This document shows, one piece after another, positions 1 to 53,000 of a stretch of DNA of 64,000 bases. Both the position numbers and the translations under genes were made by a program. The stretch's first letter is position 1. Each line of letters opens with the position of its first letter. The notes beneath the pieces are model-generated. The model was given only the letters and a program-made list of their open reading frames with translations. It was not told where the DNA came from and searched no databases. The DNA lies in assembly GCA_965285935.1 (NCBI GenBank), contig OZ260661.1, positions 47,244,001-47,308,000 on the forward strand, read 5' to 3'. The DNA is from Ophelia neglecta (lineage: Eukaryota).

Positions 1-208
1 AAAGTGGATGGTGGGGGTCCAAAGAATAAGCAGGGTCTCTGATAGGGGGGGGGGGGGGGGTCAGTGATTTAGCGCAGTCTCTGATGGGGGAGGGGCCTCA
101 TAAAATTTCACTGACACTTGAGCAGGAATTTGTGCCCCCCCCCCTCCATAGTAAATGACCATACCCTAATATCCAATGTTCTAAGAGAGAGAATGAGTTT
201 TGTGCTGG

Positions 209-4679: not shown

Positions 4680-4739
<60 letters not shown>

Positions 4740-10197: not shown

Positions 10198-10376
10198 CAG
10201 TGGTCCATGCGATGTAGGGCTCCCCTGCGATGAATGGCCGCCTGCAATGGCAGGACAGTTTTTAAATTCCCATGTTCTATCTTTACCATACTAAAGTACC
10301 TCTGATGAAGGGCCACCTGCAATGTAGGGCCACTTTTCCTTGGATATAGGGTGGCCAGACATCCCAGGGACCACTG
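10198..10376. mobile_element. MITE with TIR CAGTGGTCC and TA TSD; related copy at 58954-59114
   Basis: TA-CAGTGGTCC...GGACCACTG-TA, with internal GGCCACCTGCAATGTAGGGCCACTTTTCCTTGGAT that reappears inverted at 58954-59114. Confidence 0.8.
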
Positions 10377-14800: not shown

Positions 14801-17786
14801 CCCAGACGGAGGTCAAGGTATAATTATGTCATTAACTTCTAGTCATTCTTGAATAACAATCAAAAATCAAAAACATCAATATAAATAAATACAAATACCA
14901 TGTCTATCCAGCATCAAGCCTTAGTTTGATTAATGTTGCATTGTGGGCCTGTTCTTTATCCTATTTCCCTGCTTTCTGGCCTAAGAACCGTTATTTTATA
15001 GTCAACGAAGTTCCCTTCCAATAAAACTTTGCATTTATATGTAGATCTCCAGTGGGCCGACGACGGCCTATGGAGAAAGGCTCATACAGAGACCGCCTGG
15101 GCCCTAGGAATGATTATATAGATGATGATGATGATGATGATGATGTGATACTTGTAGAGGATCCTGATGAACATGGTATGTAACCTTCTTTGTGGCTGTG
15201 AACTTATCAATACCTGCATTCACATTGTGCTAATGTATATTCATTTTATTGACATAATATCTTTATGAAAGTGATATATTAGTTGGGAGAAAGACTTTCC
15301 AAAATTTTATTGATATTATGTCAACCCAGAATAATGATAAACTGTTTAAATTGGCTAAATACATTGTAAAAGTGTCTAAAATCAGAGAGGTAGCTTTGAG
15401 TTGTGAGATTAGTTCGAATATTAATATCATACACATTTGTTTTTGAATGTTGTATTTTTATTTGATGTATGTGAACCATGGGCCGAAGGCCTCAAAGTTC
15501 AATAAACTATTATTATCTAGTAAAATTCATATCAATATAGCAAAACTGGCACTAAACTTTAAAAAAAAAGGAGAGCTGGGTATATTGCCTTGATAACTGC
15601 TGCCTCAGTGGGTTGTTTTGGCTGTTACTAATAAATAGCTGGATTCACAGAAACCAATATGCTCCTATTTTTTATGATCATGCTACTTTTGCTTCTCAAG
15701 GTTAATATTTCAAATTTGGAGCTTGTTATCAAAATTTTGGAAATAGTACTACTATGCAGTGCAGTACAGTACAAATAACATAATGCCATAGCAAGTAGAA
15801 AGTGTTATTACATCTGTTTGTTCCTAGCTTATGCCTTACTTTTCCTTGAAAAAACAGAATTTATTTCCATGAATAAGTTGGAGAATTTGTAGCTATGATT
15901 TGACTTCAAGTTACAATTTTTGTAATACACCACTCACCCATTAAGATCTACACAACTGTAGGCCTGATACTTACAGAGATAGACCTTTCAAAATGGCCAT
16001 TAAACTGTTTTCCACATGAATTAATATGTGTGCCAATCGCTGAAATCTTTTAAATGGAAACTGAAAACTCACTGTTTTGGACTTGCTTTTGATTAAATGT
16101 AAATTTTGTTTGGGCATGGTTTAATTTAAAATAGTACATGTATTTTAGTTAATTTGGGGGCCTTTGCAGTCAGTATTGAGATTGTTCTTGATAAACGGAT
16201 ATACGTTATAAGTATATTTGGCTTTATATTGAATTTCCATTCTTTTAATAGGCAGGTTATTAATTGCAAAGGGAAAATACATTTTTAAAAATAATGTAAT
16301 ATGATTTTTATGACTCATATTGTAAACACTTATAAGCATTGTATGGGATAAGCTTTATATATTAAAACATACCCTAATAATTTCCTTTTCCTGATCACTA
16401 TTACCATATGAACAGTATGAATAGAGTGTGATCAGTCTTTTATGTCTTTCATAAAAGTGCATGGATAGATAATTATATTGATTATTGATTATTGTCACTT
16501 AAAAATAGGTTGATTTTTGTCTCATCAAAAAAACAAGAGTAGGTATTAGTAAATAGAATGAAATATCTAAAGGGAATGTTTGAATGATGGATCAGTTTGT
16601 ATGTATATGATAACAAGCTTGCACCTACAAAGATGCAACCTCTAGCAAATACTTAATTATAAGACATGACAGCACCTCAAGGACTCCAATGAGTGTTTAA
16701 TATTTCCCAGTGATCCTGCCAACACTAATCTAGGAAGATGAATATTTTATTGCTATATAAATATTTCTTTAAGCTATCCTGCATGCAGCCGGGTTACCAT
16801 TGCATCATTTTATTGTAAAGATAGCCCAGAATTAGGATATTCAACTGTAATAAACCTATCATTGAGCCTCAGTGAAATATGTACAAACACACTGAAACCA
16901 GATGGATTGTGGTATGATACAGTGACTTATATTTTCTTTGCAGAATCAAAATTTGGTGCTAGCCAGGAAGAATTTGATATGATGAAAATAATGGGGTTCT
17001 CTGATTTTGAGTCTACAAAGGTATGTCCTCATAAGCTGTGTCGTAATCAGACAGTAGGACTAATTGAACATTGTTTTAAAACCCCCTTGAGCAGTATTTT
17101 TTTGGTTGGTACTGGGAAATAACAGTTAAATATCATTTTGTATGAACTTATTGAACTATATTGCAATTTTGATCACCTGTGTGATACATAAACATTACCA
17201 ATAGATCTATTATATTGCTAAAACTTTTGGTGCATTTAAGAATTTGGACTAAATAATTTTTAATATGCTTAATATTCACATAAATAATGAGAAATGAAAT
17301 GTTCTTGTAGGGAAAGCATGTCGAAGGAAACGAGGAGGGTTCATCCTCAGTCAATCTTGTTCACAAAAGAAAATACAGGTTTGTTGAATATTAATATTAG
17401 TTTCAATTGTAAGCAGGAGTGTACAGTGGATCCCCTCATAAGAGACCACCAAAATAATTCTTATAAGAAGGGTGGTCTCTCATCAAGTGTTAAATATCAT
17501 GGCTGGTATAGCAATCTGTTTTGCAATTTTGGCAATTTTTTGTGGTCTTTCAACACTGAAGTTTACTTTTGAAGAAAATTTTTGTTGTACTAATATTTAG
17601 TGGAAATAGTATTGCAATTTTTTTATGTATAATAGTTCTTTAATGTGTTTGGAGGTAATATATCAGTCAGTAAGCTTGTCAACATTCATAAGCAACATTT
17701 TTAACCTTTCTATAATTATTCTTTTTTGCAGACAATACATGAACAGGAAAGGAGGTTTCAATAGACCACTAGATTTTATTGCCTGA
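11882..17786 (+). CDS. SNRNP27: U4/U6.U5 tri-snRNP 27 kDa protein, 7 coding exons
   Basis: Exons 11882-11915, 14236-14280, 14739-14817, 15045-15175, 16944-17020, 17311-17378, 17732-17786 with consistent phases. RS-rich N-terminus [11 protein letters not shown] and the diagnostic C-terminus [18 protein letters not shown]...[22 protein letters not shown]. Confidence 0.95.
12407..13067. mobile_element. Non-autonomous Tc1/mariner-pogo-like element, TIR CCGTATTA, TA TSD
   Basis: TA-CCGTATTA..ATATAGGCGCATGCGC at the left and GCGCATGTGCCTATAT..TAATACGG-TA at the right, with repeated subterminal TATAGGCGCATGCG motifs. Confidence 0.8.
13101..13280. mobile_element. Degenerate copy of the CAGTGAAACCTG MITE
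   Basis: Internal AAGACCAC..AAGGGACTG motif and an intact right TIR GGCAGGTTTCACTG-TA. Confidence 0.7.
13304..13553. mobile_element. 250-bp MITE with TIR CAGGGGTCTACACTAACT (hAT-like CAGGG ends)
   Basis: CAGGGGTCTACACTAACT...AGTTAGTGTATACCCCTG flanked by TACATA on both sides. A second, inverted copy lies at 62071-63028. Confidence 0.85.
13877..14190 (+). mobile_element. tRNA-derived SINE with Meta/MESC-like core
   Basis: A box TGGCCGAGTGG (13888-13898), B box GGTTCGAACC (13931-13940), anticodon-like arm CCAC-CTTGCAA-GTGG, core GGACTGGTCAACCTGGTGTCAGTATAATGTGACTGGGTGGG and a CAAACAA tail. Perfect 14-bp TSD CGTAACATAATGCA at 13863-13876 and 14191-14204. Confidence 0.9.
15440..15517 (+). mobile_element. 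Probable 3' end of a truncated LINE
   Basis: Hairpin GGCC-GAA-GGCC followed by AATAAA and a short (ATT)n tail. Confidence 0.4.
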
Positions 17787-20296
17787 TTTTTATTCATTTT
17801 CCATAAAAAAAATTCCCTAATCAATCCTTTGATTACGCTTTAGTAAACAGTGTCAGCACCTTGTGAAGTCATAAATGTTTCAAAGTACTTCTGATTTTAT
17901 TCCTTTTCATTGTTGTCAAAGGTTTGATTTTAATAGACTATTAAAAAATGAAAATAATATCTGCAGAATGTACTAGTATTTGTATGTTATATTGTTGTTG
18001 GGTATTTTTCATGGGTATCCAGTAAGCTTGCCCCCAACTCTTGATGTATTATTTGATAACATTACTCTATCTGTCTATTAAATATATTAATAAATGTGTA
18101 TTATCAAACTTACATTGTGACTTGTGATAATTATTTTATTTTAACCAGTTATTAAAAAAAAGTCAAGATAAGCAATTCATTTAGCTTTTATCTTTATAGT
18201 AAACTTTGTTCTGCCGTCAGATGTCACCTTAAAAATGTCAAATCCATGTATCTATGCTTGGAGAGATTTTAACTGCTATGTCGTGATGATCAACATGACC
18301 CATTGGATACGACTTTCAATTCATTGGGGGGTTACCACATAGGATAATCAATTTGCACTTTGATTTGCCCACACTAGTGTCAGGAAAATAAATTTCAGCA
18401 GATCCCACAAAATAAAGTGTTACTCTGGCATTGGTCTGAATGCTGTTTAAAGTTAATGTTTGCATTGAATGCATTATTGTGAGTGATCACACCAGTCCCA
18501 GTGTTATTGTGGAAAGTATTGGAATTTGTTTGAAAAACGAAAACCTTGGATTACAACAAAATAAATGATTCTGCCTTCCCAAACTAATTTTCAAAAACAA
18601 TCATTGTTAAGATGTTTGCACATTTTGCATGTTAGGTTTTTAGTAGCTTTTAAATTTAAAGGATGCACTAATTAAAATGTGTGTCGCAGTGGGCTGGTGG
18701 TATCATAGAGTCAGCAGAGTTTAGATAGAAAGGGGAGGGCCTAGGGGGCAACCTACCCAAATTTTTGATAAGAAAACTCAAATTGAGTGGGTCATTCTTC
18801 TAGCAATGCCACTGAAAGTCACCCTATCATATAGCAAAGTATTAAAATGAGGGTCTTTAGTGAAGCATTTAAAAAGGAAAAGCATTTAAAAAGGAAAAAC
18901 AAACTATGTTGAGCTTTACAAATGCTCTATATAAAGAATTTTTGAAGAAATTTCTTGTAATTCATGAATATTTACCAATCATTGTTAAAGGCACTTCATA
19001 TATATTTATTATGAAACAATTACAACTTGGACAACCCCTTTTTAAGCAAGGGGATTAATTCTGGAATCACAATATGACATTGACCCTTTTCATATTGGTA
19101 ATAAACTCCCTACTGCAAAGCCATGCTAATGACCAAGTAATTGCCCCTCCTCCCCCCCCCCCCCACACACACCCACTTAGTGAACACTTTTTTTAAAATA
19201 TAGGGCACAGCTAACAGCTCTACTCAACCAAGAGATGCAGGTAAGTAAAAGGATAAATTTGCAGGACTAATTCCTTAAGTATTTCCATATAATTATTGAT
19301 ATCTGATTAATAAAGATGCTTCCATAAATTAAGCAAGCTAAGGTTATAATAGACAGTACAATGAATTTAATGAGGCAAGCACGCAGGTTCAACACACATG
19401 TTTATTTGATCGTCTGTGAAAATACATACATATTATATTTACGGGATCCGACAAAATCTCCAGTGATGAATATAGATAAATATTAATTGTTCATTTGACC
19501 ATACAGGTTTTGGCCCTTATCTTGCATACATGGCAAATTATCAATGAAATAATTTTGTTTTAAACTTTACATGGCATAATGAGAGATCAGAACAGAGATG
19601 GCCATGCATACAAATTATTTAAACTTCTAATAATGCCCTACATGGCGTGGGCACTTGTAAAGAATGTGGTAAACCCATATTTCAAGCATAATGTTTTATT
19701 GTGTTTTACAGATACTTAAAAAACACCAACAAGTATGTTTTATTTTACTGGTCACAAACTAGTTTACTGGTAATCGAATGTCTCACAACAAACCTACGCA
19801 TGGATAGGGTCCCCCCCTCTTTTCAAGGTGGCAGCAACTATGGTTGAAGGTGATTACATTTAGCTCAACCAGCCCTACAAAGGCCAGAAATTCTTTGCAT
19901 GTTTTAGCCAGTGACTTGCACTATGGGTTGGATGAAAGTCTACATGGCATTGATAGACAAATACAGTGTTTTGCGAGTCACAAGGTTGTACCAAAGATTA
20001 GCTTAATACAGCTAATTTCAAAATTATATAATACAAGAACTCGAGCATAATCTACACCTTACCTATTTATAAATATGTACACATTATGATTGAATCACAT
20101 AAAAATCTCAAGCACCATGCCTATATTTAATCAGTGTTGGTTGGTAGGCAGTCCATTTGACTTTTACCTAGATTTTGCCACAGTCTATAAAGCTATTAAG
20201 GTCACATTTACTGTATAATGCAGACTCTTCAGTTTTCATCAGTCTGCGACGGTCCATATCCTATTTATACTTCAGTATAATCTGTTTCATGCTAAA

Positions 20297-30400: not shown

Positions 30401-33400
30401 TTTCAGAGCATGCCTTCAGTGCACAAAGGGGAAGTTGCAATAATGTTATTTACACAAAAAGACACTATAAAAACTGGAGAAACATGTATAATATATTGAG
30501 TAATAAGACAGGCACTAAAACAATAGACTGGCAGGAGGTCATCACCAGTGACTGAGGCCTTTTCGTTTGTGAAAACAATCTTCGTCAGATTTAATTAGAT
30601 TTTTCATGTACCCCATAGTCCAGACCATGTTTATTGTGTACTGGTATGTTCTGAAACTGAAGCTTTGTGGAATGAATACATGATGCATTTAGTTTGGATA
30701 CTCTTTAATCACACAAATATTTTTAGAGTATTAATGCCACTGAAAGTAAGCTTAAAATTTTGAATCAATACTTATTTTGTTAAGAAAAAATATATTTACA
30801 CAAATAAATGTGTGGGTAAGGTTCTGTCACTGATTGTGTTCCTGGAATCCTGGAAAGCAAGGCACCAAATAGAAAAAATATAGTTATTCGAAAAGGTAAA
30901 GCTCTTTATCATGACATATACTGGCATATTTTTTGAGCTTTGTGTGTAGAAACTAAGCAAAGTTATCTCTTAGACTACATGTACATTTAGGGAGAAAAAG
31001 TATTTATGTAAACAATGAAATGTCTTGTAGAAATGAAAAACTTTTCATGCATGTGAAGAAAAAATCTTGAAGGAAGAATGCAGCCACTTTTGCCACTCTT
31101 TGATATTTAATAGGAAGTATGGTGTACATACTTTGAATCGGATAGCATTTGTTGTGCTATAGTTTATGAACTAATGAAATGCTGATCTCAATGCTATGTG
31201 TGGGGGCCTTTTGCGCTCAGGTTACTGAATGCTCACTAGCTGTTAACATAGTTTGATCAAGTGTCTTTGGTAGGTGCAAGTGTTTTGCCCCAGAGTTATT
31301 GATTCTTTTTATTATCTACTGAATTATATAACGAGATGTCTGTCATGTTTGGTGTATTATTCCATACACTGGTCTTGATGGACTAAGAAGCCCTTGGTGT
31401 TACTGTATAGATCGAAGAAGGAGGACGTCACTTATCACGTGATATTGTTAGTTACTGCTCCAGCTGGAGACAAACAATCAGTGCCGCCATGTTGGGTACA
31501 TGTTAAAGTACACGGTCTTAATATCAGCTCCGATGATTTTGTGTTTGAATCCAGTATTTATGCGTGATTCTGACAGATTTCTACATTTGTGGAAACCGAA
31601 AGCTCTGATTAAGGTGATTATAGCATTGGGCAGTGTTTTCCGCCCTTCTGTAACCACCGAAGCCTGCGAGAGATCTACCGATTTTTTCGGTTTCCTACCT
31701 GTGAGGACAAGCTGAGAGATATTATTTAATGTTAAAAGCTTAATAAATGTAAGTCTATAGGTTTTATGAAATTGAAATTGGGTAGGCACTTTAGATTTAG
31801 TGCATCTTCCTCATGCCACATTTGCATGACTAAGCTTGCGCAATTATTTACAAGAACCCTGGTCAGAAATTCACACATTACCATTGTGACATTGCAATTC
31901 ATTAATTCACTGTCACAAACAATATGACACCCAATTTGCTGAAATAATAAAGCCCCAATAATATTACTTACACATAACATGACTTGTAAAATCCTTATAC
32001 ACCACTAGTACTGGTCCCAATAAAAAAAAAACGTTTAGCGAACAGGCGTAAATATGGGGGATTTAAGATCTTACGCACACGGTACGACAAACTTGCCGTT
32101 ATTTCGTACGAAGTGTCCTTCATGCTGGCTTTGACCCGAGCTGAAATGTGATGCACGCGAACCATTATAGGTAAATCTTTCTAATAGCTCCGACTTGTAC
32201 ACATTATCCCCTTTCTTTATCTGTTTTTCTTCGCCGGCAAAGAACGCTGCTATACACGAAACGCCTATCACCGCCATCTTGAAGAAACTGTGTATACCCA
32301 CAGAAGCCCGTTGTCAGGTCGTCGCCACGCTCTGACGCGCAGCTGACGTCAGAGCTTCTTCGATCTATTGGATTCCCTAATCAATATCATTTGTTGTAGT
32401 TGTTGTTTTGGAAACATGTGCCTTCAACACTACATGACATTATGTACATGTATATAAATGTGTATATTAAGGGAAAATTAAATTCCTGTGAACTTTTTTC
32501 CTGTCTGTTGGTACTTTCAAGTCATGTTATTGGAATAATGTACAGGATGTAATCCTTATATTTTGTTTTTCTTGCAGAAGTCAGATAATTCTATGCTGGC
32601 TCAGTTCTTTTATGCCGATGAAGAGTTGAACTTGATTGCCGCAGAGTTAGACAGTTTTGATGGGAGAAAGGATCCAGAAAGATGTACTTCTCTTGTCAAC
32701 CAGCTGCGAACAAGTCAGGATAAAGTCTTAACCATCATTGAAAAGATAATGAATAAAGTGATACCAGAGCAGCGTGCCAATCGTGACTTCAGAGTCAAGT
32801 TCCCTGATGATGTTCTCCAAGAAAGTCTGGCAGGGCAGCTGTGGTTTGGGGCAGAGGTAAATTATTAGATTAGTTGTGCACTTTTTGCCATTTTCAAGGG
32901 TAGCGTATGGAAAACTTCCATACCCTGCTGTGTAGAGATTCTGTTATAGTAATGAAGTATGAAAGCCCCTAACTTTTTATTGCAAACAAACAAAAATGAT
33001 TTTGGGAAATAAGAAATATATTTTTGACCTTCAAGCAGTCTTTTAGATTCAAATTGATATGTAGGGCATGCAGTTCATATATGAAAAAGCCATCTTTTTT
33101 CATACATATATCACTAAACACCCTTTTTTATGTATTGTTTTTTCAACTTTTTCTCCCTATTCATAAATTGTGCAACTTCATCTTTTCTCATAATTGCATG
33201 GTTCATTTCCCAAATTCATATGGAAGCTCAGGGTGTATTTATAACTGGGTAAAATTCATGCCACATGTTATATATATACCAAAAAGCAGGCCATTAATTA
33301 ATGTGTTTCAAACATTAAAATTTTATTAACTTGCGATGAACCAGTAACACAGATTTGACCTTCTTGTTGGCACTGACTTTATGCAAACACAGTCAGTCTT

Positions 33401-36400
33401 TAAATAAACGTTTGCCTGACTAGTTTTGGTTTTATAACTAAGATATCTTAATATTCACTGGTACAAAAATCTAGGAAATCTATTATATGTGGCTTCACCA
33501 CCATATATAAGCAGAAACTAAAATTGGCAATAAAAAAAGTTTATCATATACAGTAACTGCTAAATTTCATAGTTTTAAATTAAAACTGTGATGTTTACAA
33601 TAATACATGTGGTATTGTTTCTTGGCAGCAACACAGGTGTCAGTTGTTTAGTAATGAAATTCAAAATTAAATTGTTAAAACTGTTACAAATTTACATGCC
33701 TTTATTCCAGTGTTTGGCTGCTGGCTCACTCATTATGAACCGAGAGGTAGAAAGTGCTAGTATGAGGCCATTGGCCAAGTCACTCACTAGACATCTGGAT
33801 GTTCTACGCAGCCTACTCAGGGATCAATGCCTAAGAAACCAAAATGACTACACTGACAATATACTAGAGTCACTGGCAGTCTTTGATAGGCTTTTTGCCG
33901 AGTTTGAGCTAAGGTAAGTAGTATGACAGAAGGTGATCTTATGGTAAATGTAAAAAATGAAGAGTAAATAGATATATTTTTTTCTTTGTATTTTTTAAAT
34001 TGCTGATATATAAATATTAACTAAAGATACCCTTATCAAATGTAAAGTCTGTTTAAGCACCTCTTTTCATGCTTATGACCTTTTTATTCTGTAGCTATGT
34101 TAGTGCTATGGTCCCAGTGAAAACCATGAAGGAGTATGACTTGATGCAGGATGTTGTGGTACTATTCTGTGAAACTTTGGAAAGGTATTGCAACTATTAA
34201 ATTTATGATATTACTCTAAGTGAATTATGAATTTGTTGATCTCTTTGAGTTTTTCCAAGAACGGGTTTTGTATGCGATGCCATGTGATCCCTGCACTACT
34301 AGCACGACTCTAAATCACACCTCTCATTAATTGCCTTTTATCAGAGGTGAAAGGTGTTGCCTAACTTTTATGCTAACTGTTTGAGTTTAGTTACAAACTC
34401 GGAGATACATATTTTCAGGGCTTTGAGGATAGGACTGTTAAAACAGGACCAGTTAGATGACTATGACCCAGCTCTTATGTTCACAATACCTAGATTAGCC
34501 ATAGTGTGGTAGGTATACTCCTCAGAATATATTTATCTCATTTGCCTGTTCATATTGATATTTAAAAGACCTAATTGAAGAAAGTGTTTCTCTGTCAAAA
34601 TTATAACAGAATGAGAAAACAAGTGCAACCTAGTCGTTTTACTGTTATTAGATGAATAACCTTGTAATCTGTGTTCTAGTGGGCTCCTGGTCTTCCCAGA
34701 AGGTCCACTCAATCCTGATATGGACCCCATGAATATGTCGGAAATGTTCCGGCCATTTCAGACACTTCTTTATAAAATAAGGTAATTTTCTCCATGTCCA
34801 CATCCAATTTGATATTAATGTGGACTGTGGAGTATATTCCAGTCACTTTCTGTTTCATACAAGTCAGAATTCTAATTTTTAATCTTATCCCAGGTGTTAT
34901 TAACTTTGTTGCTGTTGTTTTTTGTAGAGAGTTGCTGTGGACCCTGAGCAGACAGGAGCTGTGGCTTCTTGAGAAGTCTCTGTGTAGTACCGAGGAGCCA
35001 GTTCTAGGAGAACGCAGTGTGGAGGATCAGCTAAACTCTATCAATGCAGGCTGCAAAACAAACAACAGATTATCATGTCTTAGTAGCAGCCATGCTGAGG
35101 ATACAGACCCCAGTAAGCTGAGCCAGTCAGGCTCCGAGTACAGCCAGGAGCTGACCGGGTCAGAGCACAGCCAGGAGGGTTGTGACATGAGCCACTCTTT
35201 GTCCTCTATGACTATTGTTGCCAGTACAGGTGGTGGCCCAGACTCAGATACAGACTCAGGGTCAGACATTGAAGCAGGAAGCTCTCTGCCAGGCAAGATG
35301 GCAGACAACAGCTCCAGTTCTAGCCACAGCCACCACGCTAGCAATGACTCTGGCCTATTGAGTGAGCCAGATATCTGTGAGCCAGGACAGTCCACATCAA
35401 ACCCTGTGCCCTCCGGCAGCTGCACTCAGCCAGAACTCACCAGTGTGGAGGCAAGAAGGCTGAGACACTCTCAGTCCTGGCCAGAGCCCACCAGGAGCCT
35501 GCAGAGAAGCAGACAAACCTTGCTGACTGAAGCCCCCATAGCTGAGGCTGAATATACCAGCAGCCTGGAGGTCCTTGACGACATCAGGCTGGAGGGCCGT
35601 TCCAACAGGCGCTGCACTCACAGTACAGGCAGCCAGGAGTTCTTCTTTCATCTGCCACGGAACACAGGCCTAGAGGATAGCACACTTGTCAGTTTACCTG
35701 GCATCACTTCGGATAACACAGAAGAGGACTCTCAGGCAGAGCAAGTTGTCCTCACCAATTCCAGCCCTGTGCGAGAAGATGGTCAAATTTCCTTTGTTAC
35801 TGATGCCCTTAATCAAGTATTTGTGACCGATCCTTCTTTCAAAGGAATGTCTTTGTCCCCATGGGACCAGCAAGCACCCCCATTCAACCACATCAAATTC
35901 GATGGGTGTGAACAGCCTGCTGTTCAGAATGGAAGCAATCCTGATGTTTCTGAAAAGATTAGAGAGCCTGAGGTTCCTAGTGATAGTCCAGAACCTAATA
36001 TGGCTAACACTGTGCACACCAGCCAAGGTGTCCCTTCTAACTGTGATATTTCCCGTGATGGACATTCCTTGGAGGAAACTACTGTGAATGACTCCCCTAA
36101 AGTGAGTAGTAAAAATAGGGCGTCTGTAGACTCAATCAATAATACTTTTGAAGAAAAGGATAATACAGAAACTTTAGAGAAGGAATTGCAGCGTGGTAAA
36201 AAACGCAAATCAAACAGACACAAGATCGTAAATTGCCGTGAAGGGAAGTGTAATGGAGAATGTCTAGATGTGCCAAAACTAAACAAAATGAAATATAACG
36301 AGACCATGAATGCCAACTGTTCTCACAGCCACAGTCCCAGTGTGGAATATGATTGGGACAGAGAAAGGTACTGTGCTGGTCTCTATTTGTTTATAAGTAT

Positions 36401-37781
36401 GTACTGGTAGTAATATTTAATTTTTCAAATGCATTAATGATTTGAGCATTTAAAATCGACAAAGGTCATATCCCAGAGACCTAAACATTTAGGCAACCAG
36501 ACTTATTTTAAAGGTCAATATTTCTTCAGCTATGCAAGCAGTGAGACCAGCTCCTACAATTCTGACAGTCATGATGATGAAGAAATTGCATTAGCAATAC
36601 AAGCGGCTGAGCTTGCAGCCCGGCGGGAGGCCAGAGGAAGATTCAAATCCAGTGCCGATCTTATTCACAGACTCTTTGTCTGCATCTCAGGTAATGTATA
36701 TCTAAATATGGAATTGTTTGTATCTGATGAATGTAGGGTTGTAAACTCCTGGCCTTCAATGTTGTTTAGTGTACCAGGCATTTTAATTATTTAGTTCTCC
36801 TGTAACTAGCTGGAGTTAGAATTAATACCTCTATATGACAATAAACAGGAGTTGCAGATCAGCTGCAGACAAACTATGCGAGCGACTTGCGTCACATCCT
36901 GAAAGCAGTGTTTGATTGTATCTCCTTGGAGAGTCTGGAGAACGAAGAGGAGGGAGAGGAGGAGGAAGCAGACTCGACTGACTCCAGCGGCAGTGAGGAC
37001 TCGGTGGACGATGGCCTCCCCAACGAACACCACAATACTCGCAGCCGTGCCCTTGATGAAGCTGGTAGGTATTCTTAATAACCCCCTGTCATGTTTTAGT
37101 ATAAAAATCTCAGTCCTTACATTTGGGCTACAAAATAAAGATGAATATTACATACCTTTTATTCTATAATTTTTGAAAATTGATTTTTCTGTGTCCCTGT
37201 CACTACATTTTGGACTTCAAGATAGATTGAAGCAACTGAGAAAAAGAGTCTGGATTAGAAAAATTACTATTTTATTTGAAAATTGAACAAAACAAGGCAG
37301 ATATTTAAAGATATAAGATTGACTTAACACAGGGGCAAAATCAAAATTATTATATTATTATATTATTCATATATGAATTCAGAGCCACCAGAATGGATTC
37401 CTGATGGTGAAACCCCATACTGTATGGCGTGTAAAGTGCCATTCACATTTGTCCGCCGGAGACATCACTGTCGTAACTGTGGCAAGGTAGGTTTAAATAA
37501 CTAATTGTAAACTCCCTTATTTGGGTCCTGTATTGATGCACACTGTGTTTCATATATGTTGCAAGAAAAATAGGTTGGTTTCCTCTTTTGAAATTGAATT
37601 ATTAAACCACCCAAGTCCTTTGGCTGGATGATATACTTACATTATTATTGTAATATTTCAGATATTCTGCGGTAAATGCTCTTCCAACTGTGTACCTCTG
37701 CCTCACTATGGCCACTCCAAGCCTGTGCGAGTGTGTAACCATTGTTTTGTATTCCAAGTCACCCCCTTCACTGTGCGGTGA
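24494..37781 (+). CDS. ZFYVE28: Lateral signaling target protein 2 homolog (FYVE-domain protein), 11 coding exons
   Basis: Exons 24494-24535, 32578-32856, 33711-33913, 34095-34184, 34419-34508, 34680-34781, 34928-36367, 36530-36690, 36849-37064, 37383-37486, 37662-37781. [14 protein letters not shown]|[67 protein letters not shown], and the FYVE domain [34 protein letters not shown]. Confidence 0.95.
31407..32368. mobile_element. Non-autonomous DNA transposon with 14-bp terminal inverted repeat (ISL2EU-like) and a decayed ORF remnant
   Basis: ATAGATCGAAGAAG (31407-31420) and CTTCTTCGATCTAT (32355-32368) are perfect inverted repeats whose outer AT may be the TSD. The interior is CpG-rich. The minus strand from 32277 reads [29 protein letters not shown]..., then after a frameshift [17 protein letters not shown]. 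Confidence 0.75.
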
Positions 37782-41044: not shown

Positions 41045-44000
41045 CTATGTTGATCTAAAGGTTGAAGGAAAGTTGCCTGCTTTGGCTGTGTCTAATCCAA
41101 ACAACATTCTTAGATCTGCTAAAGTTAGTTTGTTTGCAGATGCACCAGCACCTGTCAGGACATTTTCTGCAAGGGACAGTTTTTTCTTCTGCAACTGAAG
41201 TATTTTCTCCTCCACAGTGTCTTTGCAGATAAATCGGTGAATGAACACATCCCTAACTTGCCCCATTCGGTAGACTCTGTCACAAGCCTGCTGCTCCAGG
41301 GCAGGGTTCCTGTTGAAGGTAAATATATTCATTTTTATTCATATAGAGTTCAAAGCCAGTTTATGAAATACGGGGGGAGATACTACTCATTTACCATAGT
41401 AGTTTACCAGGTTATGGCTTAATGTTTTGGCTGTGATGCTGTATAACCACAATGCTCCAGGTTATTCAGATGTCACACTTTGTCAGGTTTGTAAGTATAA
41501 CAGTTACCGCTGAGCTGTACTAAAGAAGTTGCTCTGAGAGCTTTTATTCATCTGAACAGAAACCTGGTAAAAAATAAAAACCTATTATTATATAAACATT
41601 GCAAATCATTGTTTAAATCAATCACAATATTAGATGTCTGCTATGACAAGGCATGCAAGCCTTTCTATTTATATTGTACATGTCTCAGTACTTCCTGTTA
41701 ATTAACACTTTAATAGCACACTGACCAAAAATAAGTTTATTACTTGAAGCTAATTGCCTATATCTGCTGTTAGTAAGAATCATTCCTATTACATTCCAGT
41801 TGCAGATCAACTTGGAATGAATAATACATAATTACAATATTAATTGTGAAGTTGGATCAATCCTCCATGTCAAACATTGAAGATGGCTTCAGCTCAGCAG
41901 TTTTGGGTGGATTTCACCGAGCAGGATTTGGACCTTCTGCAGACACAGATCTATGATTTTGTGTATTGTGTTGGTGAGGAGAAATATGGTGAAAAATACA
42001 TTATGGGACAATTGGCCAAGAAGAACATATCTGGTCTGGTTAGGGCCATCAGAGATGGCTTGACTGTTGAGTGTCTTGCTGATCTGAATAATTATTTCCT
42101 AAATAAATTTATTCTAGAGGGTTTTGAGTTGTATCAACATAGGATTAACTGGAGTTTTCTTGAAAACCATAACCCTGGGGATCAAGATGAAGACTTCTAC
42201 CAATTTGTTGCAAGAGAATTTGAATTATCAAAGGCAGATACCTGCACAGATGGTCAAAGTCATGCTTTGACTACACCAAGGATAACAATTGACCATCGTT
42301 TTACAAAAAAAGAAAAATCCAAAACACAAATGATGGAGTATTTAGTTGATTTCAGTATGTATCATGATACAGAAGAAATTAAGTTTCAATTGAGAGATTT
42401 CATTACAGCTGTTGGCAAACAAAAATTTACAAATTATCAGTTGAGTTACAACATAGATATACAAATTTATGATCTGATGAATCCCAAGAAATATGCCCAG
42501 GATTCAAAACATGTTATCTTAGGGCCTGAGGAGCTGACCTATCACTTTAAAAATAAGTTTGTTATTGATGCTTTTAAGCATGTTTCTAATGATATTAAAT
42601 GGATGGATGAAGAATTACTTTATGGCCCTCACAACTGTCATATAGACTTTTCAGTGGAAGGAGATGTCGCACAGGAGAAAATGTTCCAGAGCATCCGTGA
42701 CTTTATATATCATGAGCAAAACCATTGGGGACTAAGTCAGCCTCAAATAGATAATGTGTACAAAAATCTTAGCCATGCCATACTATCGAAACTGTACAAC
42801 AAGCATCCTGATTATGTGTTTTCATCCCCAGCAGACCTCAAGACCTGGGTACATCATGATGCTGTACTCAACTCTTTCATCAGATACTTCAGGAAAATAA
42901 GATGGGCCAGTCCAGTGATGAAATTTGTCCGAAATTATGAGGATGCAGGTGAAACACATGTGATACTGGTCAACTTTTATACTGATGATTTAGAGTATCT
43001 CCGAGGGCAACTTGATAGTTTTGCCACACGTGCTGGAAAGCAGTTTTATGACCCTTTATATCTTAGGTCGCCAACAATAGAGGGCCAAATTGATCGGCTC
43101 CTGGACCCAAGATATTATATGCAATCCAGAGAGCATACGATAAGACAACCCAGTGATCTTGCTAGGTTCTTTACTCAAAATTTTATGCAAAAAGCTTTCT
43201 GTTCATACAGGGACTCAATCAATTGGATAGCTGATAAATTTGAACAAGGGGACATGCCATATAAACATTTGCCACCAGATTATTTCCTCAGACCACCAGA
43301 GCCTCCTTTTGAGAGAGTGTCAGACAGATCAGTTCTGGTGAAGAAGGCCTCCTGGTTGGTATCACCGTTTGCTCGTAAACTATTGATGCAAGAGGAATTA
43401 TTTTCATTGATAGATCAAATTTCAGCCATCTCCAGCCCAATACAGCTAATTCCTCCAATATATGCCTTGGAAAACAAAGACCATTGGTCACAAACACTAT
43501 TGGCAGTCAACGTCCAAGGTATCAAACCATACAAAACTCGGGTAGATTTCCCATCTTGGATAAATGACAATATGACTGTGAGTTTTGCAGGGAAGAAAAT
43601 GGGACTTAGAACTTTTCTACATCATCCATCACATTGTAGGTTCAGGCAAACGTATAACGTTAAACAAGATTATCTTACTGCCACCAACACTGTATACTAC
43701 TTAGTAATCTATGTACCAGAGTTTGAGGCCAGGAAAAATATGCCTTTTTATGGCAGAGAACCATCAGCCTACCAAATCTACATAGGAGAGGCGCGTAAAG
43801 GAGTACTTGATAGATGGATCAATCAGCGTTATGCGCACTGCCGTGTGACCAAACGACTGCTTCAACACCATAGTCTGCAGAAAAGTCTTGGAAAAGGATT
43901 CATTGCCTATGAACCAGGTCCCAATGACACCAATGCCCAGCTACCGCAATGTCTTCTGGCCCTAGCCCACGTGAAGTCTTATCCTACAGCATTATTTGTT

Positions 44001-47000
44001 TTGAATTCATGTTATAATGTGGAGCAGATGCACAACGTGGAGCAAGAACTCATAGACCTCCATCATGCTAGAGACATGACCCGAGGACTTAATCAGATAT
44101 AGCTTTAGACTATATTAAATATTACAATACATGTAGTGACAATATGAAGTGTAATGCAGTTACTATAAAAAATGGGTATCCTTTGTAAAAAGTATTGACA
44201 TGCCCTGAAATGTATGATTTGCATGATGCCAAGCCTTGGGTTTTGCCTGCTTTGTCTATAATTGTACTATCAAACAGTTTTGATAGGTTTTTATTAAATA
44301 ACCATCCAATAAGAAATCATATTGTGTTGTTATTATCATAAGATATAATTAAAATTTTGATTACTAGTCAGTCACCATCAATAGTATACCACTGTGTTTA
44401 GGTCTATTGTTTCCATGTGCTTGTGTGTGGTGTTGCCAGCCATTTCTTTTTAGTAGTATTGCATACATTTATGTGTCACTACTCTCCAAGGCTGCCACCT
44501 GTTGAACACACTGACCAACCTGGCTATTTTTGCTGAACAGCGACCTCACACATGGGAAGTGGGGGAATGACACAAAATTAAGTGGACAATGAAATTCAGT
44601 GCAACTTAATGTATTTTCATTATCATCCTGAGAGCCTATTACATTCTTGAATGTATACAGGGGTTGAAAACAGTTGAAAGGGCAGTTTGAGCAGTGGTCA
44701 ATTGATGGTTTAACCTGTGGTTTAAGTTAAACCATGAGATCAGAAATGGTTTAACCACTGAATACATGGATTAACCAACTACATGTACATAATTACAGTT
44801 ATCTGAATAGTCACCAGTGCTTGCAAGCACTAATCATAACAGCATGGAATGTTGTCCTGTGAACTATTCTTGTAAAGGTATACCAAAATACAGGGCTGGT
44901 CTGATTCTGTCTATTTAATAAATTCTTCATGACCGCAACATCTTAGGAACTACATGTTATGTACTATAATTTGCAATAAAAACGTTTCATACCTTAATAA
45001 AATAAAGGCAATAAGAAAAGTGCACGTGTCTCAATGTTTAATAAACATACATATATTAATTGTCATATATGGTAACGTGTTATGTCAAAAGATCGCGTGC
45101 GTCTAAAACTGTGTGGATTATGTCATGTAAAAAAGGCAAGTGTCTGAAATTATTTCCAAGAAAACGCGTTGCTTCCCCATCCCCTCCCTCTTCTGACGTG
45201 CCGCCCCCTTCTCCTAGCAGTTTATGGCATGTTCAGGCCGCCGCGGTCAACCTGTGTGTACAAGTACGCAAAGGGTACAAGTAATGTACATTAGTCGCCG
45301 CGCTGTGACTCAGTCTCACTCCAAGAGTTCTGCAAGCGCTGTACTGTCATTGAGAACAATCTGGGATAGACAGATACAAGTTCTTCTCGAGGACAAATAT
45401 TACATGAAACAGACAAAAAGGTTGGTGTTTTTAGTATTCATCACTTAGTTATGAGGAACTGTTGATAAATGCGACATGATATTGTTCCCTTTTTGTTTGG
45501 AATATCGGAAAAGTTTGTACATGTGTTGAGAAGGCAGGACTTGCTAACACCTGTTTCGGCTGTGTATATAACCCTACAGCGTGTACCGTACAATGTTCAG
45601 ATGCGCTATGCTACGAATACAGGGTGATATCTTTCATTTTGCAAAAATATCAAACTGGCATTGATGATATCTTTAAAAACGGTAATCACTTTTAATCCCA
45701 AATAATATTGCGGAATCAGTCCTGCATGCGCATGCCTCACTAGTTCAGGACAGCGAAAGCCACGATCACAGACAATATAGTACAATACAATACCTATGCC
45801 ACTGTGCCACTGGACACGGTTCATGTCTCTGGGTCATGAGTTGCCGGTAATGTATGTTATCTTGCTGACAACATACATTACCGTAATAAAGTCAGTTGAT
45901 TATTACTCAAAGCCAAGTGCCGCGCCTACTTTGCCGCTTGTCAAGTCAACAGATGAAAGGGGCATGTGCTGCAAGTCAAACAGAGTGAGTGTGGGATTGA
46001 GCCACTGCAATGTAGCTTGTCGTTCAAATATGTTTAATTGCCCCCCACCTTTTAGGGATGTGGCGGAATATATAATGGGCTTCGTCCTCAATAACGAAAG
46101 GCGAGAACTTCAGCCCTATATCAAATCGCAGAGCTTATATTGCATGCATGAGAATATATGGAGATTTTTTTCCAAGTAGTGTTTGGGTCATTACTGCCTA
46201 CACTACTTCAGTTATTAAAAAAATCACAGTTTTTGTATGCTCTGCAGCCTAAAGTATTATAGGGGCAAAGGGAGAAATTGGCAGGGATGAAGCACCTATA
46301 GATGGACATGGGCTGAGGGTAGTTGGGGGAAGAGCTGGGGGGGGGGGCTGTTTTCTTTTTGCAAATATATTTGGGGGGGGGGGTGGATATCTGGCACTTT
46401 TTTCAACAAAATTTGCAGTCTTTCGGAGGGGGGGGGGCCTTGCATTTCCAAACGCCACGTTTGCATTTATTTTCAATATTGGGTGCAACATATTAATTCA
46501 CGCCAGTGGGTGTTAAAAAGTATAGATATGATATAGGGAGGTTGCAATGCACTTTCAATGGTGAAATCTCAGATTTGACTTTTCTTAGGCATTGAAAAGG
46601 GCCACAATTGGGGGGGGGGGGGGAAGGGGTCTGTACAATAGTCTTAGGAGGGGCTTGAGTTGCCTGCCTGCAATTAGTGAACCTGTACATACGGACAAAA
46701 TCATTGGTCAATGGTTGAAAAGAAGCACCCTGTGTCTGAAGGTTCATCTTGGTGTACATGTGTGTTAGAAGATGACCTGCAGCATGTGCCTCATGATGAC
46801 CATGCATATGACAAGGAGAGATCCTTTTGCTGTAGCAGTATTTAATAATCTTATTACATGTGTGTTAAGGCCCCTGCATGTTAAGATGACCATAATGCAA
46901 GAGTCAAAATACATTGCTTTCAATTTAGCCTCTCCAGTGTCTTTTTGGTGGCATATAACTAACAAGTTTATATGAATTCCAAAATATGAATCCTAAAAAC

Positions 47001-50000
47001 AATATTAACCAACTGGATTAGAATTGTTCATCGATTTAGTCACATTATTTGCTAATACTGCATTAATTAGTTATTCACTGTTATTTCTCTCTCTCCAAAA
47101 ATATAATATGATGCATATCTGTGAAATTGGGATGCAGCCTTGCAATCTTGATCTGAATTTTGTTCTAAGCTGAGGACTACTCTTGCATCTGGAAAAATGA
47201 TGTGATCAGATGATACATGAATGTGGTTAGCCCATAAGTGATTGGATGGTTAAACCATCCACAGCCCACTGGTAGCCTGCCACACTAACAGACCAAAATA
47301 GCACACCTGCCCACCATAAAATCATGGACATAAATGCTTTTCACATAGGATGTTCAATGGTAATAGCTGTAATAGGCAAGCCACTGCTTTCATCATGGAC
47401 TATAGGCTTCTTTCATCTGGGAACAGTTCACTGTAATAAAATAATAAAATAAACAGGAGGTATACATGTACCCTGTAGCTACATCTGTATTCCCACCAAT
47501 CTGGGAATGTATCTTTAATTATAACAGCCTAATACAAGGTGAGAGAGGGAGAGAGCCAGAGTGTGTGTGTGAGTGGGGGGGGGGGGGGGAGGAGCATCAT
47601 TATTTAACACAGGCTGGGAAGGGTTATAGATTTGATGATATTTTAATATGTTGTCAATAGGTGTGGTATCTTTCCCAGCATATCAGTTTTGAGTGTTTTG
47701 TGATGCCTTACCTCATCTGATGTCTCTCCATTAGAGATTTTTTGGTATATGTGACCCCCCCCCCTCCCTTTGCCCCTGGTGAATCATTATCCAACCTATC
47801 TAAAGACTAGGTTCATGAGTACCAGTGTGTTAAACTTACAGATATACATGTATAATGGTGTCTTTAACACTTTCCAAACTGACTTCATCTCACTTCCTTT
47901 CACTCGTTACATACATAATGTGGCTAAATTTGAGGTTAATTGGCCAGTCAGTTAAAAGTGGTTTGAGAACAGATAGTCATCAAACCAAGATTGTTGGGTG
48001 CCCTTGTTTAATCATAAATTTTTTAAGACTGATTAGCACTGCATGGGTACTTCTCGATTCAATTCTTCTTTAAATATGTAAAACTGTGTAAACATTTGTT
48101 TTAAACTGTAAAAAACGTTTGTAAGGTACTGTATTCTGACCTAAAACATGTACATGTATAGAATAACTTTGCAATGCAAGCAGTGTTCCATTTGTAAGAC
48201 TATATGTTTTTATCATGGTAGCAAGGAAATATCTTTCAATTTTATTCTGATAATGGGAATCAGCATGCAGTGAATTGCATCAGACTACACCCTTTTAAAA
48301 ATTTTTTTTTTTTTTTGGGGGGGGGGGGGGCAGCCCTTGAAAAAAACATCCCTTAATATTTTCAGAAGTGCTATTTTTCACACACCTGCAGTTTTTAAAT
48401 AACAAGGGCTGTAAAAACTATCTTACTGAAGGAAAAGAAAAACAGACTAGGCTCTATAGTCATAAAATATATGTTTTCAGGTTAATACCATGGGGCTGAA
48501 TTATCTCATAGACTTCACTAAAATGAGCAGCTTGAAAGGACAGCTGATAGAATTTATAGAAGTTGCTGGAGAAAAGCAGTATGGCAGGAAATACCATGGA
48601 ATATCCAGATTGGCTGTGAGGAGTGTGGAATCCCTTGTAGAAGAAATAGAAAAGGATGGCTTGGAAGTGCATGGCATCCCTGACCTGAAAACATTCTTCT
48701 CCCAAATATATATACTTAAGAGATTTTTTGAACTTCAGTCTAAAATCAAGTGGTACCCTAAACGAAGGAATGGGTACTTGGTTGATTTCACCCAATTTTG
48801 GGATTTACTAGAAATAAAGTTAGAATTGACCAGGCTTGTAGAGAGAATCGGGAGGGAGCTTGACCCGGTGGGCTTCAAAGTGCCTGATAATGTTATCAAA
48901 GGAATTGATCAACTCTTGGATCCAAATTTGTATGGGCATACGCATGGACTTCTCATGCGAACACCAAAAGATTTTGATGATTTATTACCCAAATATATAA
49001 TAGAAGGTTTGGAGGAATATGAAAACCAGATAAAGTGGATGGGCCGGGATACCAACCATACCCGAGAAATGTTGGCAATAGAGAAGAAATATCGCATTGA
49101 CTTTACCCTTGTCCACGACCTCGACAATATGCGATTGCAGCTTGATGCATTTCTGTTAATTGCTGGCAAGGAGGAATGTGGCTGTTACTATTTTTTATCA
49201 AATACCATACTGAGAGAAACAGACAAACTATTGGATAAACGATATTATGGCAAAACCTTTGAGCACAACATCACCAGACCAGATGACCTGGATGCATTCT
49301 TCAAGCAAAGATATGCTCGCAGAGCCTTTAGAAAATACATCAATGAGATTAAGTGGGCAAAGCCTCTGGCAAGAGCTAGCAGATATCTACCCTATGAATA
49401 TTTCTACTTCCCTTTAAGTCGTCCACCCATGCCTCGAGTGCCAAGGTTTATCAATCCCATGATACAAAAGGAATCCTGGAAAATGTCGGCACTGGAGCGG
49501 AAAAAGGTTCTTCAGGAGGAGTTGTACTATCACGTCAGAAACATTCCATTTGCCATCAGGTCTCCAATACAGGCTTTGCCTCCGGTATATGCCAGGAAGC
49601 AAATCTCAGATACTGGGGACTCTTGGTGGTCTTCACAGTGCTGCTATGACTCCAGCATCAGCAGGTTTACCATGATATCAACTGACCACCAGTTCCCTAG
49701 TTGGCTTAGTGATAAGTGGAAGAGCATTGAATATAGGGGTTTGGAGATGGGCCACAGGAGTTTCCTACATCATGCTATCCACTCCACATTTCCCAAGCCC
49801 AGCCACCTGGAATACAAGTTCACCGTCTATTGCCTAGTAGTGTACGTGACTGATTTTGAGAGGTATCAGTTGGTCAATTATTGTGCCCCTGGGGATGGAA
49901 GCTCTGGTCCCAGTCCATATCAGGTATACATCGGGAGGGCCAAGAATGGCCTCATGGACAGGTGGTATGATCAGCCGTACAGCCACACCAGGGTAACCAA

Positions 50001-53000
50001 GAGACTGATCACCCAAATGAAGGGGCTGCTGGAGACTGGCAGGCCTTTCAAGGCATACAGCCCAGGCTCAGAGCACATAGGCACTGCTCAGCTACCCCAA
50101 ATAATGATTGCTCTGGCAAAAGCAAAGTTCTACCCTCATGCTCTTTTTGTCCTCAAAACTTGTGAAAATGAGATCGAAATGGACGAGTATGAGCAGGAAA
50201 TGATAAAAGCTACCAAGGCTAATGACATGCGCTTTGGACTGAATGTGATGCTTTAGAGGTGCTTAAAATGTTTAAACGGCAGCTGAAAACAATGTGGTTT
50301 GATTCTGTCATGTTAACCAGGAGTGCCTTCGACACCAGGCGAAAAGATATATTCATGATTGATGATATCATATTGAATGTTTAAGTAGGAATGTGTTTGA
50401 ATAGTGACACTTAATTTAAGTTCTGAGCATTCATGTTATGTAAGAATTAACATCACTAAAATAATGTTAAGAAATGCAAAAAGTTTGCAGAGCATCCCAA
50501 CTTTTCTCACTCATTACTTGCAAAACTATATCTTTAATTGTTAAGGATAAACTTGGATACTTTTTTTTACCATATTGTAAACACATGTTGCATAAATAGG
50601 TACCATAAAATTAATTCAGCTTATAGAATGTTTAACTCAGTTTAGTGTTTACAGTAATAATTATTAGATTAGATTTAAATAATTAGTGTGCCATTTTTAA
50701 TCAAGATGCCCCAGGAAGTAAACAGTAGTATGATAAAAGTGTTTACCTGCCACATTAATTACTCATTAAATAATTTAATCAAGTAAAATTGTATCAACCG
50801 ATCCATATAAGAATAAAGGAGACATGTTAATTTTATAATTGGTCTCTGTTTTATTGATATAGTGCACTTAGTTGGTCAAATAAGGAAAAATTTATAAAAT
50901 ATTGTAAAGTTTTAAGTGGGGTTCTGCATACAACTTTAAGGGTACATTCTAATGAAATCTAGAGGCAGGGGGCTGGGTTTTACTAATTCTACTTGGGGAA
51001 CTTGCACTCTGCGCAAACAACTTTAGAAGGTTTTTTTTAATAAAAACTTGGGGAAGGGGGTGTCAATATAATTACTTCAAGGGGTAGTGCTGAGTGTCAA
51101 ACCATTTAATGACCTGGGAAGGGGGGGGGTACCAATAAAGTCTCTGAGGGGGGTTCAAATAGATCAGTTGTCTACCCCCCTATTAAAAAATGAAAAGTTT
51201 GACTGGTCGCCTCCCTTGACAACATATAAATGAAAGCCAAGGGGGTACAATTGTGCCAAAGCATGGAATCTTTGTTCAATCAGCGATTTTGTATGAATTG
51301 AAAGAGTCCAACAACTAGATGAAAGAATTATACTTACCAATGCATATCAATGAGAAATAGATGATTTCCTCCTATCAAGTTCAGGCCAACCCCTCCTGCT
51401 CTGAGTGACACAAGCATTACCTACAAGTTAAAGTATTATCTTAAGTAATATGTCCAAGTTCTATCACAAGTTTTTTTTATAGACTCTAAACATCATGTGA
51501 CATTCTTACAGACATACCAATGGAAGTTAAGGGCACTGCTGATAAGAGTAAGTATTACTTGCTTTCTTATATATTTACTTCATAAACTAAAGTTAGAAAT
51601 GATGCTTTATACACCACAGTTTGTCTACCTACCTCTGGTCCCTTTGGGTCTGAGTTAAAGGCATCTACAAGTTCGGCACGGGTTTTGGGAGGGACATTTC
51701 CGCGTATTGTGCAGCATTTCACACCTATCTGCTTCAAATGATGCTCGACTACATCCAGCATCTTGGTCCATTGGGACACAATCACACTGTGAAAAAATGA
51801 AATCATTAGAAAAATAAAATACCATTATCAAAGCTTGGACCTGTGAGTGTGTCTATGATCCTACAACATACGGAGAAATCTTAACTCTCACAAAATATAT
51901 TTCTCTACCAAAAAGCCTTTACCTACAGTTGATACTATGGAAACCCAACCTACAAGGTTAGCATAGTATTTCCTTTAACCAAACCCTGTGGGCCAACTGA
52001 GGAAAGTCTAATATTTTGTACATGCTATGTATTCATTAACAGCTTACCTTTTCATGGGTTTGCGTTTGGAAGATGATTCTTGTATCTCCTGTATGCCTTG
52101 TAGTATAGCCTTTATCTGGGAATGAAACAGGCAGAACACATTTAACTATGTATGTTATATGAGAATGGAAGAGGCACTTAGACATCAAACTCAACTAGTG
52201 AAATTTCTGCACTTTTGTATTCTATACATCATATTCACACATGGACCAAACCAGGTTTCCCTGTACATGAGTATTAAAGTGATTTACGGGGGCCATCATG
52301 ACGTCACAACCAACTTGCATATTTTCACTTTGTGACATCATTAAAATGACTCATCAGGCTGGCTCGGTTCTTTTCATAATTGAATTTGTACTGCAACTCC
52401 CACGATTCCCATAGGTCTGCCAGCATTGACATTTGTAGTCTTTCAATTATTTTTGCCTTTAATGTTGAAAATGATAGGTGCTCAAAACTAAGATAGCAGC
52501 CACAAATCAAGACGGATAGCAATCAGGGCCTTAAGAAGCTGTTTCTTTGCAAATTTTGTCTCAGAAAATTACATGTATTTAATAGCAGGTCATTATCAAG
52601 AAAACACTTGTGTATATTTTTTACTCCAGCACCACAAATGTCCATATATTTATGGCAACTTGAAAATGCAAGTTGGCACTTTGATTTGATACAGACTAAC
52701 AGAATAATGAACCACAGGTGCTGCTGATCATTTGACAAAATCAAAATGCCTGTGTAGAATCTATAGGGCAACTAGTGGACTGTAAAGATTTATGCGAGGT
52801 GCAGGAATTGTTGGAATCTTGTTGGCTTTTATTATCTGTATGTATAATTATATATATCATTGTGTGTTGGTCCCTATACGACTTATAGATCAAGTAATAA
52901 AAATCTTGAATCTTTGAGAGTTAATCAAACAGCTGCCAGATCTACCTTGGTGCTCTCAACACTATGTTTGAAGAGATCTGAGCTTTTCTTCAACTCTGGC

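Follow-up and report, generated by a model that had tools for sequence, protein, structure and literature searches.

We analysed a 64,000-nt stretch of DNA from Ophelia neglecta (contig OZ260661.1, positions 47,244,001 to 47,308,000), hereafter called the window, and found that two of its open reading frames (ORFs), ORF A and ORF B, encode real paralogues. Both lie on the plus strand, and we assign their products to a branch of the GIY-YIG superfamily that occurs in animals and is uncharacterised. The genes are called A and B below, and all positions are those of the whole stretch. The interpretation that we favour, and hold to be fairly probable, is that A and B are host-maintained DNA endonucleases of a new GIY-YIG family, in which an I-TevI-like unit is tethered by a basic linker to helical modules that would set its target or its regulation. 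The analysis shows the pair of genes, their paralogy, low copy number and old duplication, the fold, the intact signature residues and the distribution of the family; that the proteins are active nucleases, that they act on DNA, that the repeats target them and what they do in the animal are inferred.

An earlier description of the window, made from the letters alone and called the sequence-only reading here, had reported two long ORFs of 739 and 588 aa with a common architecture of repeats, a middle region and a nuclease-like end. The coordinates agreed with ours, and the architecture was found in both proteins. The frame of A starts at 41877/41883 and ends at 44102, with 739 aa counted from the first ATG. 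Given the base composition, the chance of a stop-free frame is ~1e-22 for A and ~1e-16 for B, and the remaining five frames of each ORF stretch contain 18 to 67 stops, so that the openness of both frames is far beyond chance. BLASTP aligned A with B over 610 columns at 32% identity (E value of 2e-79). The identity of the C-termini, previously put at roughly 45%, was 46.8% over the final 139 aligned residues.

The AlphaFold model of B residues 341-588, built with a 25-sequence alignment, formed one compact body with a predicted local distance difference test (pLDDT) score of 92 and a predicted template modelling (pTM) score of 0.90. A five-stranded beta-subdomain was followed by a domain of beta-beta-alpha-alpha-beta-alpha topology. 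In an unbiased scan of solved structures, this model matched I-TevI, T4 EndoII, UvrC and PD-T4-3, with Hpy188I and Eco29kI lower in the list, and SLX1 and ANKLE1 were absent among the matches. A Foldseek search of the PDB gave no match for this model or for the model of the repeats described below. Matches among the predicted viral structures of BFVD were weak (E values of 0.03 to 0.5), and most of the top rows were GIY-YIG or group I intron endonucleases. The best structural row in the ESM Atlas was a cluster with PF01541 in 37% of its members, and the whole protein yielded weak leads only. At the sequence level, A and B gave no match at the gathering threshold of Pfam PF01541; seven of the 25 family members matched PF01541 below that threshold (best E value of 0.002), and one matched Eco29kI. 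Searches of PHROGs, PADLOC, NCBIfam and the PDB sequences returned nothing for A or B.

The signature of the GIY-YIG superfamily comprises the Tyr of the GIY motif, the Tyr-x-Gly of the YIG motif, a central Arg, a C-terminal Glu and usually an Asn (PMC1564403). All seven signature residues were present in A, in B and in P0001, their closest relative, and each position was kept in 21 to 25 of the 25 members. The matches in the structure scan and the complete catalytic set in both proteins uphold the proposal that the C-terminus is a GIY-YIG domain. The fold assignment for the C-termini is sound, and the A and B enzymes are probably active. Two features are atypical. An additional helix of ~25 residues separates the strand of GIY from that of YIG, and the domain is fused to the beta-subdomain, which carries invariant Trp and Pro residues of its own. 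The column of the catalytic Glu contained Ala in Ciona P0029, Ser in Branchiostoma P0023 and Glu in Clavelina; either certain members of the family in deuterostomes may lack activity, or a shift of one turn in the alignment may account for this.

When 1.84 billion representative proteins were searched exhaustively with a profile (E value of 1e-3 or less), 40 relatives were found, with E values from 1e-33 down to 1e-5; a word-indexed homologue search with B found nothing. P0001, of 595 aa, comes from a marine sequencing run, in which a contig of 2.5 kb encodes it. Its identity to B is 42% from end to end, with the same three repeats, and its identity to A is 33%. The contig has 150 nt before the ATG, with an in-frame stop, and ~550 nt after the frame, with AATAAA 13 nt from the contig end, and its CpG is undepleted (observed/expected ratio of 0.96). 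Judged by these sequence features, it looks like a transcript of a quite different organism. The accession of the run resembles that of a Tara Oceans metatranscriptome. Five relatives of 410-464 aa (P0002-P0005 and P0031) have a single repeat beside the core. The short metagenomic matches lie on gene-poor, eukaryote-like contigs.

The named relatives were Ciona intestinalis LOC100183120, Clavelina lepadiformis LOC143470313, Branchiostoma LOC118429881/LOC109484198 (a homologue conserved in four species) and a Ptychodera flava protein. They have only the core of beta-subdomain and GIY-YIG domain in common with A and B, with profile E values of 6e-9 to 9e-6 and core identities to B of 23-25%. The motifs that they share with A and B are PPxYA...W, FPxW, the YIG-Arg-Trp-His block and the GLN end, and the full motif set of the animal family (PPxYA...W, FPxW, YIG...RW...H, ALFV and GLN) was found in both A and B. 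The helical repeat was undetected in their N-termini. Unlike the intronless A and B, their genes span 5.5-9 kb with several exons, and they lie at ordinary, unrelated loci. The Ciona homologue (AP043572.1, locus 10001-16737) lies antisense inside a CMS1-domain gene (1-18280, minus strand); this nesting may be a coincidence or a recurring arrangement.

A scan of the IMG/VR viral contigs found no relatives, scans of metagenomes found again a single contig that was already known and nothing further, and the exhaustive profile search, PHROGs, PADLOC and NCBIfam gave no bacterial or defence-system relatives. Literature searches, whose coverage was incomplete, returned no description of an animal family combining this beta-subdomain with a GIY-YIG domain. 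The suggestion that the family is possibly undescribed therefore holds in part. It is uncharacterised, has no Pfam model, and no paper on it was found; however, its core is already annotated, as an uncharacterised protein in each case, in Ciona, Clavelina, Branchiostoma and Ptychodera.

The maximum-likelihood tree of the core showed the topology (A,(B,P0001)), with support of 100/99 and 99/95, indicating that the duplication of A and B predates the split from the source organism of P0001. The clade of these three was well supported, and its place among the other family members only weakly. Synonymous sites were saturated in all three comparisons, and 39-43% of the aligned residues were identical. 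These data agree with the previous suggestion of an old duplication with both copies retained. The conserved residues at saturated synonymous divergence, together with the positional orthology of the repeats, are strong, albeit indirect, evidence of purifying selection, which had also been proposed.

The N-terminal repeat of ~90 aa begins with a strand of the pattern hydrophobic-Asp/Asn-Phe-Thr/Ser and ends with Ile-Lys/Asn/Arg-Trp. In the AlphaFold model of B residues 1-345, each repeat was predicted to form a small domain of helices that two short strands close off, with pLDDT of ~80-90 within the repeats. No sequence or structure match to it was found in the sequence libraries, the Foldseek PDB search or the ESM Atlas. 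Repeats inside one protein showed about 13-34% mutual identity. The first repeat of B was 38% identical to the first of P0001 and 35% to the first of A, and the third repeat of B was 51% identical to the third of P0001 and 40% to the fourth of A. Because this positional orthology has been kept, the array predates the duplication of A and B, and each unit has a conserved identity of its own. Residues 92-150 of A (42156-42332) form an acidic spacer of 59 residues between repeats 1 and 2, without a counterpart in B or P0001, which could be a decayed repeat or an insertion. The isoelectric points (pI) of the repeats range from 4.6 to 9.6, with several repeats acidic, and the most basic parts of B and P0001 are the last repeat and the linker. 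This mixed charge argues against a simple array in which all units bind DNA. The epithet repeat-guided, which the sequence-only reading had attached to the proteins, is still a conjecture, considering this range of charge and the lack of a known fold.

Both genes had been placed antisense inside a single intron, and canonical GT-AG splice sites were found at exactly the proposed ends (41310-51337). On the minus strand, the donor GTAAGT occupies 51337-51332 and the acceptor AG 41311-41310. The intron interrupts a Trp codon, and the splice joins '...LIDMHW' to 'NPALEQQ...' in motif VI of the SNF2 helicase. The host-gene exons encode the end of an SNF2-family helicase with a Helicase_C match, their PDB matches are generic SNF2 proteins, and no GRF zinc finger was found within the window. 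TTF2 is thus a putative label, given to the host gene by the sequence-only reading.

With B as the query, the 762 Mb assembly was searched in all six frames and yielded two copies only, A and B themselves. The 11.5 kb around the pair contained no terminal inverted repeats (TIRs) and no long direct repeats of the long terminal repeat (LTR) type, no notable tandem arrays or RNA family matches occurred around the pair, and no ORF for a reverse transcriptase (RT) or a transposase was found near it. The 4.4 kb spacer between A and B was unique sequence except for one dispersed repeat of ~190 bp. The statements that the pair is flanked by no RT, transposase, TIR or LTR and that it is not a multicopy transposon thus proved correct, and A and B are not a transposon. 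The observed/expected CpG ratio was 0.31 inside the two ORFs and 0.34 in the window. The ORFs are thus depleted to the same extent as the window, which gives no hint that A and B arrived recently.

Structural kinship to I-TevI does not extend to the architecture of the proteins. Compared with the I-TevI-type homing endonucleases and T4 EndoII, the domain order is reversed in A and B, where the nuclease is C-terminal, and A and B add the helix between the GIY and YIG strands and the beta-subdomain in front. No match between these enzymes and A or B was found at the sequence level, and the NUMOD and helix-turn-helix (HTH) modules that define I-TevI-like homing endonucleases were not detected in A or B by Pfam. 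Furthermore, homing endonucleases reside in or beside group I introns of phages or organelles, whereas A and B are nuclear, lie in a spliceosomal intron, and are low in copy number and old. Membership in the I-TevI-like homing endonucleases was rejected on the basis of the C-terminal nuclease, the lack of NUMOD/HTH modules, the nuclear location and the two old copies.

The architecture had also been said to be unlike those of SLX1, ANKLE1 and Penelope, and the defining features of each were indeed absent. SLX1 and ANKLE1/LEM-3 (COG3680) are cellular animal GIY-YIG nucleases with accessory domains, and the Slx1 group lacks the C-terminal Asn (PMC1564403). SLX1 was rejected since A and B have no RING domain in Pfam searches, carry the nuclease at the C-terminus instead of the N-terminus and possess the C-terminal Asn. 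ANKLE1/COG3680 was rejected since Pfam detected no ankyrin or LEM domain, and the ~90-aa helical repeats are unrelated to ankyrin. The endonuclease of Penelope-like elements is likewise a eukaryotic protein with a C-terminal GIY-YIG domain; however, it is fused to an RT and multicopy, as opposed to A and B, which have no RT and occur in two copies. When the A/B family was compared with the Penelope endonuclease domain of this genome, BLASTP gave an E value of 0.11 and the profile-profile comparison with hhalign 0.099, and only the YIG-Arg stretch aligned. Neither value is significant, and with the lack of an RT the Penelope link was rejected.

The compact C-terminal unit combines the five-stranded beta-subdomain with a GIY-YIG domain that is of the I-TevI/EndoII type. 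If A and B are host-maintained endonucleases, its complete catalytic set of Tyr, Tyr-x-Gly, Arg, His, Glu and Asn would carry out a metal-dependent hydrolysis of a DNA phosphodiester bond; following the usual chemistry of the superfamily, Glu and Asn would hold the metal, and Tyr, Arg and His would act on the scissile phosphate. The basic, proline-rich linker ties this unit to the N-terminal array of three or four helical domains, which may set the place or the time of action of the nuclease through contact with either a partner protein or a nucleic acid. In this proposed role, the array would resemble the binding modules tethered to the nuclease in GIY-YIG homing endonucleases, albeit with the opposite domain order. 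Three observations weigh against this interpretation. The model of B residues 1-345 had an overall pTM of 0.38, so that the arrangement of the repeats relative to each other is not confidently predicted. The Ciona homologue lacks the catalytic Glu, so some members of the family may be inactive. Moreover, the synonymous rate (dS) is saturated among A, B and P0001, which leaves the ratio of nonsynonymous to synonymous substitution rates (dN/dS) without an estimate.

A stronger version of the proposal is decidedly unlikely in our estimate. In it, the helical units would constitute a modular array of a new kind that recognises nucleic acids, each target segment being read by one unit (copy number 1 to 4), and that directs the I-TevI-like nuclease to particular DNA of the host, a transposon or a virus. 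It is also unlikely that the proteins are maintained for something other than DNA cleavage, with a GIY-YIG unit that is a binding module, cuts RNA or is a pseudo-enzyme, and with repeats that mediate protein-protein contacts. The acidic repeats would suit such a role, as would the loss of the catalytic Glu in the Ciona homologue and its replacement by Gln or Ser in three other members. However, the retention of the seven signature residues in A, B, P0001 and 21-25 of the 25 members is hard to explain without catalysis, and those members of the superfamily that have been characterised are DNA-directed nucleases (PMC1564403). That the ORFs are non-functional relics, still open by chance, is exceedingly improbable, considering the stop-free chances of 1e-16 to 1e-22, the 39% of residues that are identical at saturated synonymous sites, the intact motifs in both paralogues, and the occurrence of full-length P0001 on a 2.5 kb contig with flanks that resemble untranslated regions and with AATAAA 13 nt from its end.

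The origin of the genes bears on two further explanations. A selfish or mobile element that is spreading now or did so recently, either a free-standing gene akin to those of homing endonucleases or an unrecognised transposon that contributed its nuclease ORF, would explain the location in an intron as an insertion. The catalytic domain is structurally nearest to homing endonucleases, A and B are intronless and nested in an intron, the Ciona homologue is likewise antisense within another gene, and the distribution of the family is patchy. Nevertheless, we regard this explanation as quite improbable: the 762 Mb assembly holds only two copies, 32% identical to each other; TIRs, LTRs and a nearby RT or transposase are lacking, and the spacer is unique apart from the ~190 bp repeat; the duplication is older than the split from a distant organism; the genes of the homologues elsewhere have several exons and lie at ordinary places unrelated to each other; and the CpG depletion is the same as in the host genome. 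GIY-YIG homing endonucleases are abundant in phages and giant viruses, and capture of such a gene, as an endogenous viral element or by horizontal transfer from a phage or a giant virus, would be consistent with the intronless coding sequences (CDSs) and with most of the top BFVD matches, which are proteins of this kind, although statistically weak. A viral or bacterial capture is highly improbable, however, since every named match among the 40 relatives is an animal gene and the unnamed ones that were looked up lie on gene-poor, eukaryote-like contigs, searches of IMG/VR, PHROGs, PADLOC and NCBIfam gave no relatives, and the composition is fully host-like. No mobile or viral ancestor was found, and the term domesticated, used in the sequence-only reading, is still conjectural.

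To our knowledge, very few cellular GIY-YIG nucleases have been credited to animals, namely SLX1 and ANKLE1, in addition to the domain of Penelope elements. The present locus points to a further animal family, conserved and, to judge from its residues, apparently catalytically intact, which is spread over this spiralian-like genome, tunicates, amphioxus and acorn worm and has no Pfam model. Its repeat-bearing subfamily adds a domain without a sequence or structural match, whose position-specific sequences have long been kept. If the repeats direct the nuclease, the proteins could represent a new route for DNA repair, for the control of transposons or viruses, or for programmed cleavage in invertebrates, and the homologues in Ciona and amphioxus make the family experimentally approachable. 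Even if the family proves to be a quiet housekeeping nuclease, several hundred residues that reference genomes list as 'uncharacterized protein' would gain a useful annotation. If the modular recognition array were true, it would amount to a hitherto unrecognised way in which bilaterians survey or edit genomes at specific sites, and possibly to a new scaffold for programmable nucleases.

Table 1. Coordinates of genes A and B, their domains, the spacer repeat and the surrounding host-gene parts (window positions; residues of the respective protein).
Feature	Positions	Strand	Residues	Remarks
Gene A	41883..44102	+	739 aa + stop	Intronless CDS; 4 helical repeats, linker, beta-subdomain, GIY-YIG domain
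A repeat 1	41895..42155	+	5-91	Positional counterpart of B repeat 1
A repeat 2	42333..42605	+	151-241	
A repeat 3	42630..42908	+	250-342	Most divergent repeat
A repeat 4	42957..43229	+	359-449	Positional counterpart of B repeat 3
A linker + beta-subdomain	43230..43667	+	450-595	Family motifs PPxYA...W and FPxW
A GIY-YIG nuclease domain	43668..44099	+	596-739	Y605, Y633, G635, R644, H652, E720, N737
Gene B	48490..50256	+	588 aa + stop	Intronless CDS; 3 helical repeats, linker, beta-subdomain, GIY-YIG domain
B repeat 1	48496..48756	+	3-89	
B repeat 2	48769..49041	+	94-184	
B repeat 3	49084..49359	+	199-290	Best conserved repeat
B linker	49360..49554	+	291-355	Basic, proline-rich, pI 10.1
B beta-subdomain	49555..49815	+	356-442	Forms a single compact body with the nuclease domain in the model
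B GIY-YIG nuclease domain	49816..50253	+	443-588	Y447, Y480, G482, R491, H499, E568, N585
Dispersed repeat	46129..46316	.		~190 bp; sole multicopy DNA of the A-B spacer, outside both genes
Host intron	41310..51337	-		GT-AG, 10,028 bp, SNF2 helicase gene; A and B antisense inside
Last coding exon of host gene	41045..41309	-		SNF2-family (TTF2-like) helicase, motif VI onward
Penultimate coding exon of host gene	51338..51420	-		Helicase_C core

The dispersed repeat in the spacer (46129-46316) has at least 39 further copies in the genome at 72-80% identity and looks like a short interspersed nuclear element or a miniature inverted-repeat transposable element; poly-G runs at 46336-46632 adjoin it. 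The exons of an LST2/ZFYVE28-like gene (32563-36410, plus strand) are oriented towards the 3' end of the helicase gene, so that the two genes are convergent, and one of them is an open exon of 538 aa; the nearest database protein of this gene is 37% identical and without a name. An intronless HSP70 of the assembly had its best named full-length matches at 76-79% identity, chiefly in bivalves and also in some gastropods, a chiton and the annelid Owenia, which places the genome probably among the spiralians, with no annotated close relative. The CpG ratio of 0.34 in the window, at 37% GC, was alike in exons, introns and spacers, which suggests that the germline is heavily methylated throughout the genome, a state unusual among genomes of invertebrate type. 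Canonical PF01541 matches number at least 79 in this genome. Those examined were near-identical Penelope-like copies, with an RT and a GIY-YIG domain, endonuclease domains 98% identical and frames of up to 819 aa (for example C9:16373417, C2:102790343/102794913, C7:104640429 and C12:69802068), and several occurred in close inverted pairs. These features point to a young and possibly active retroelement family.

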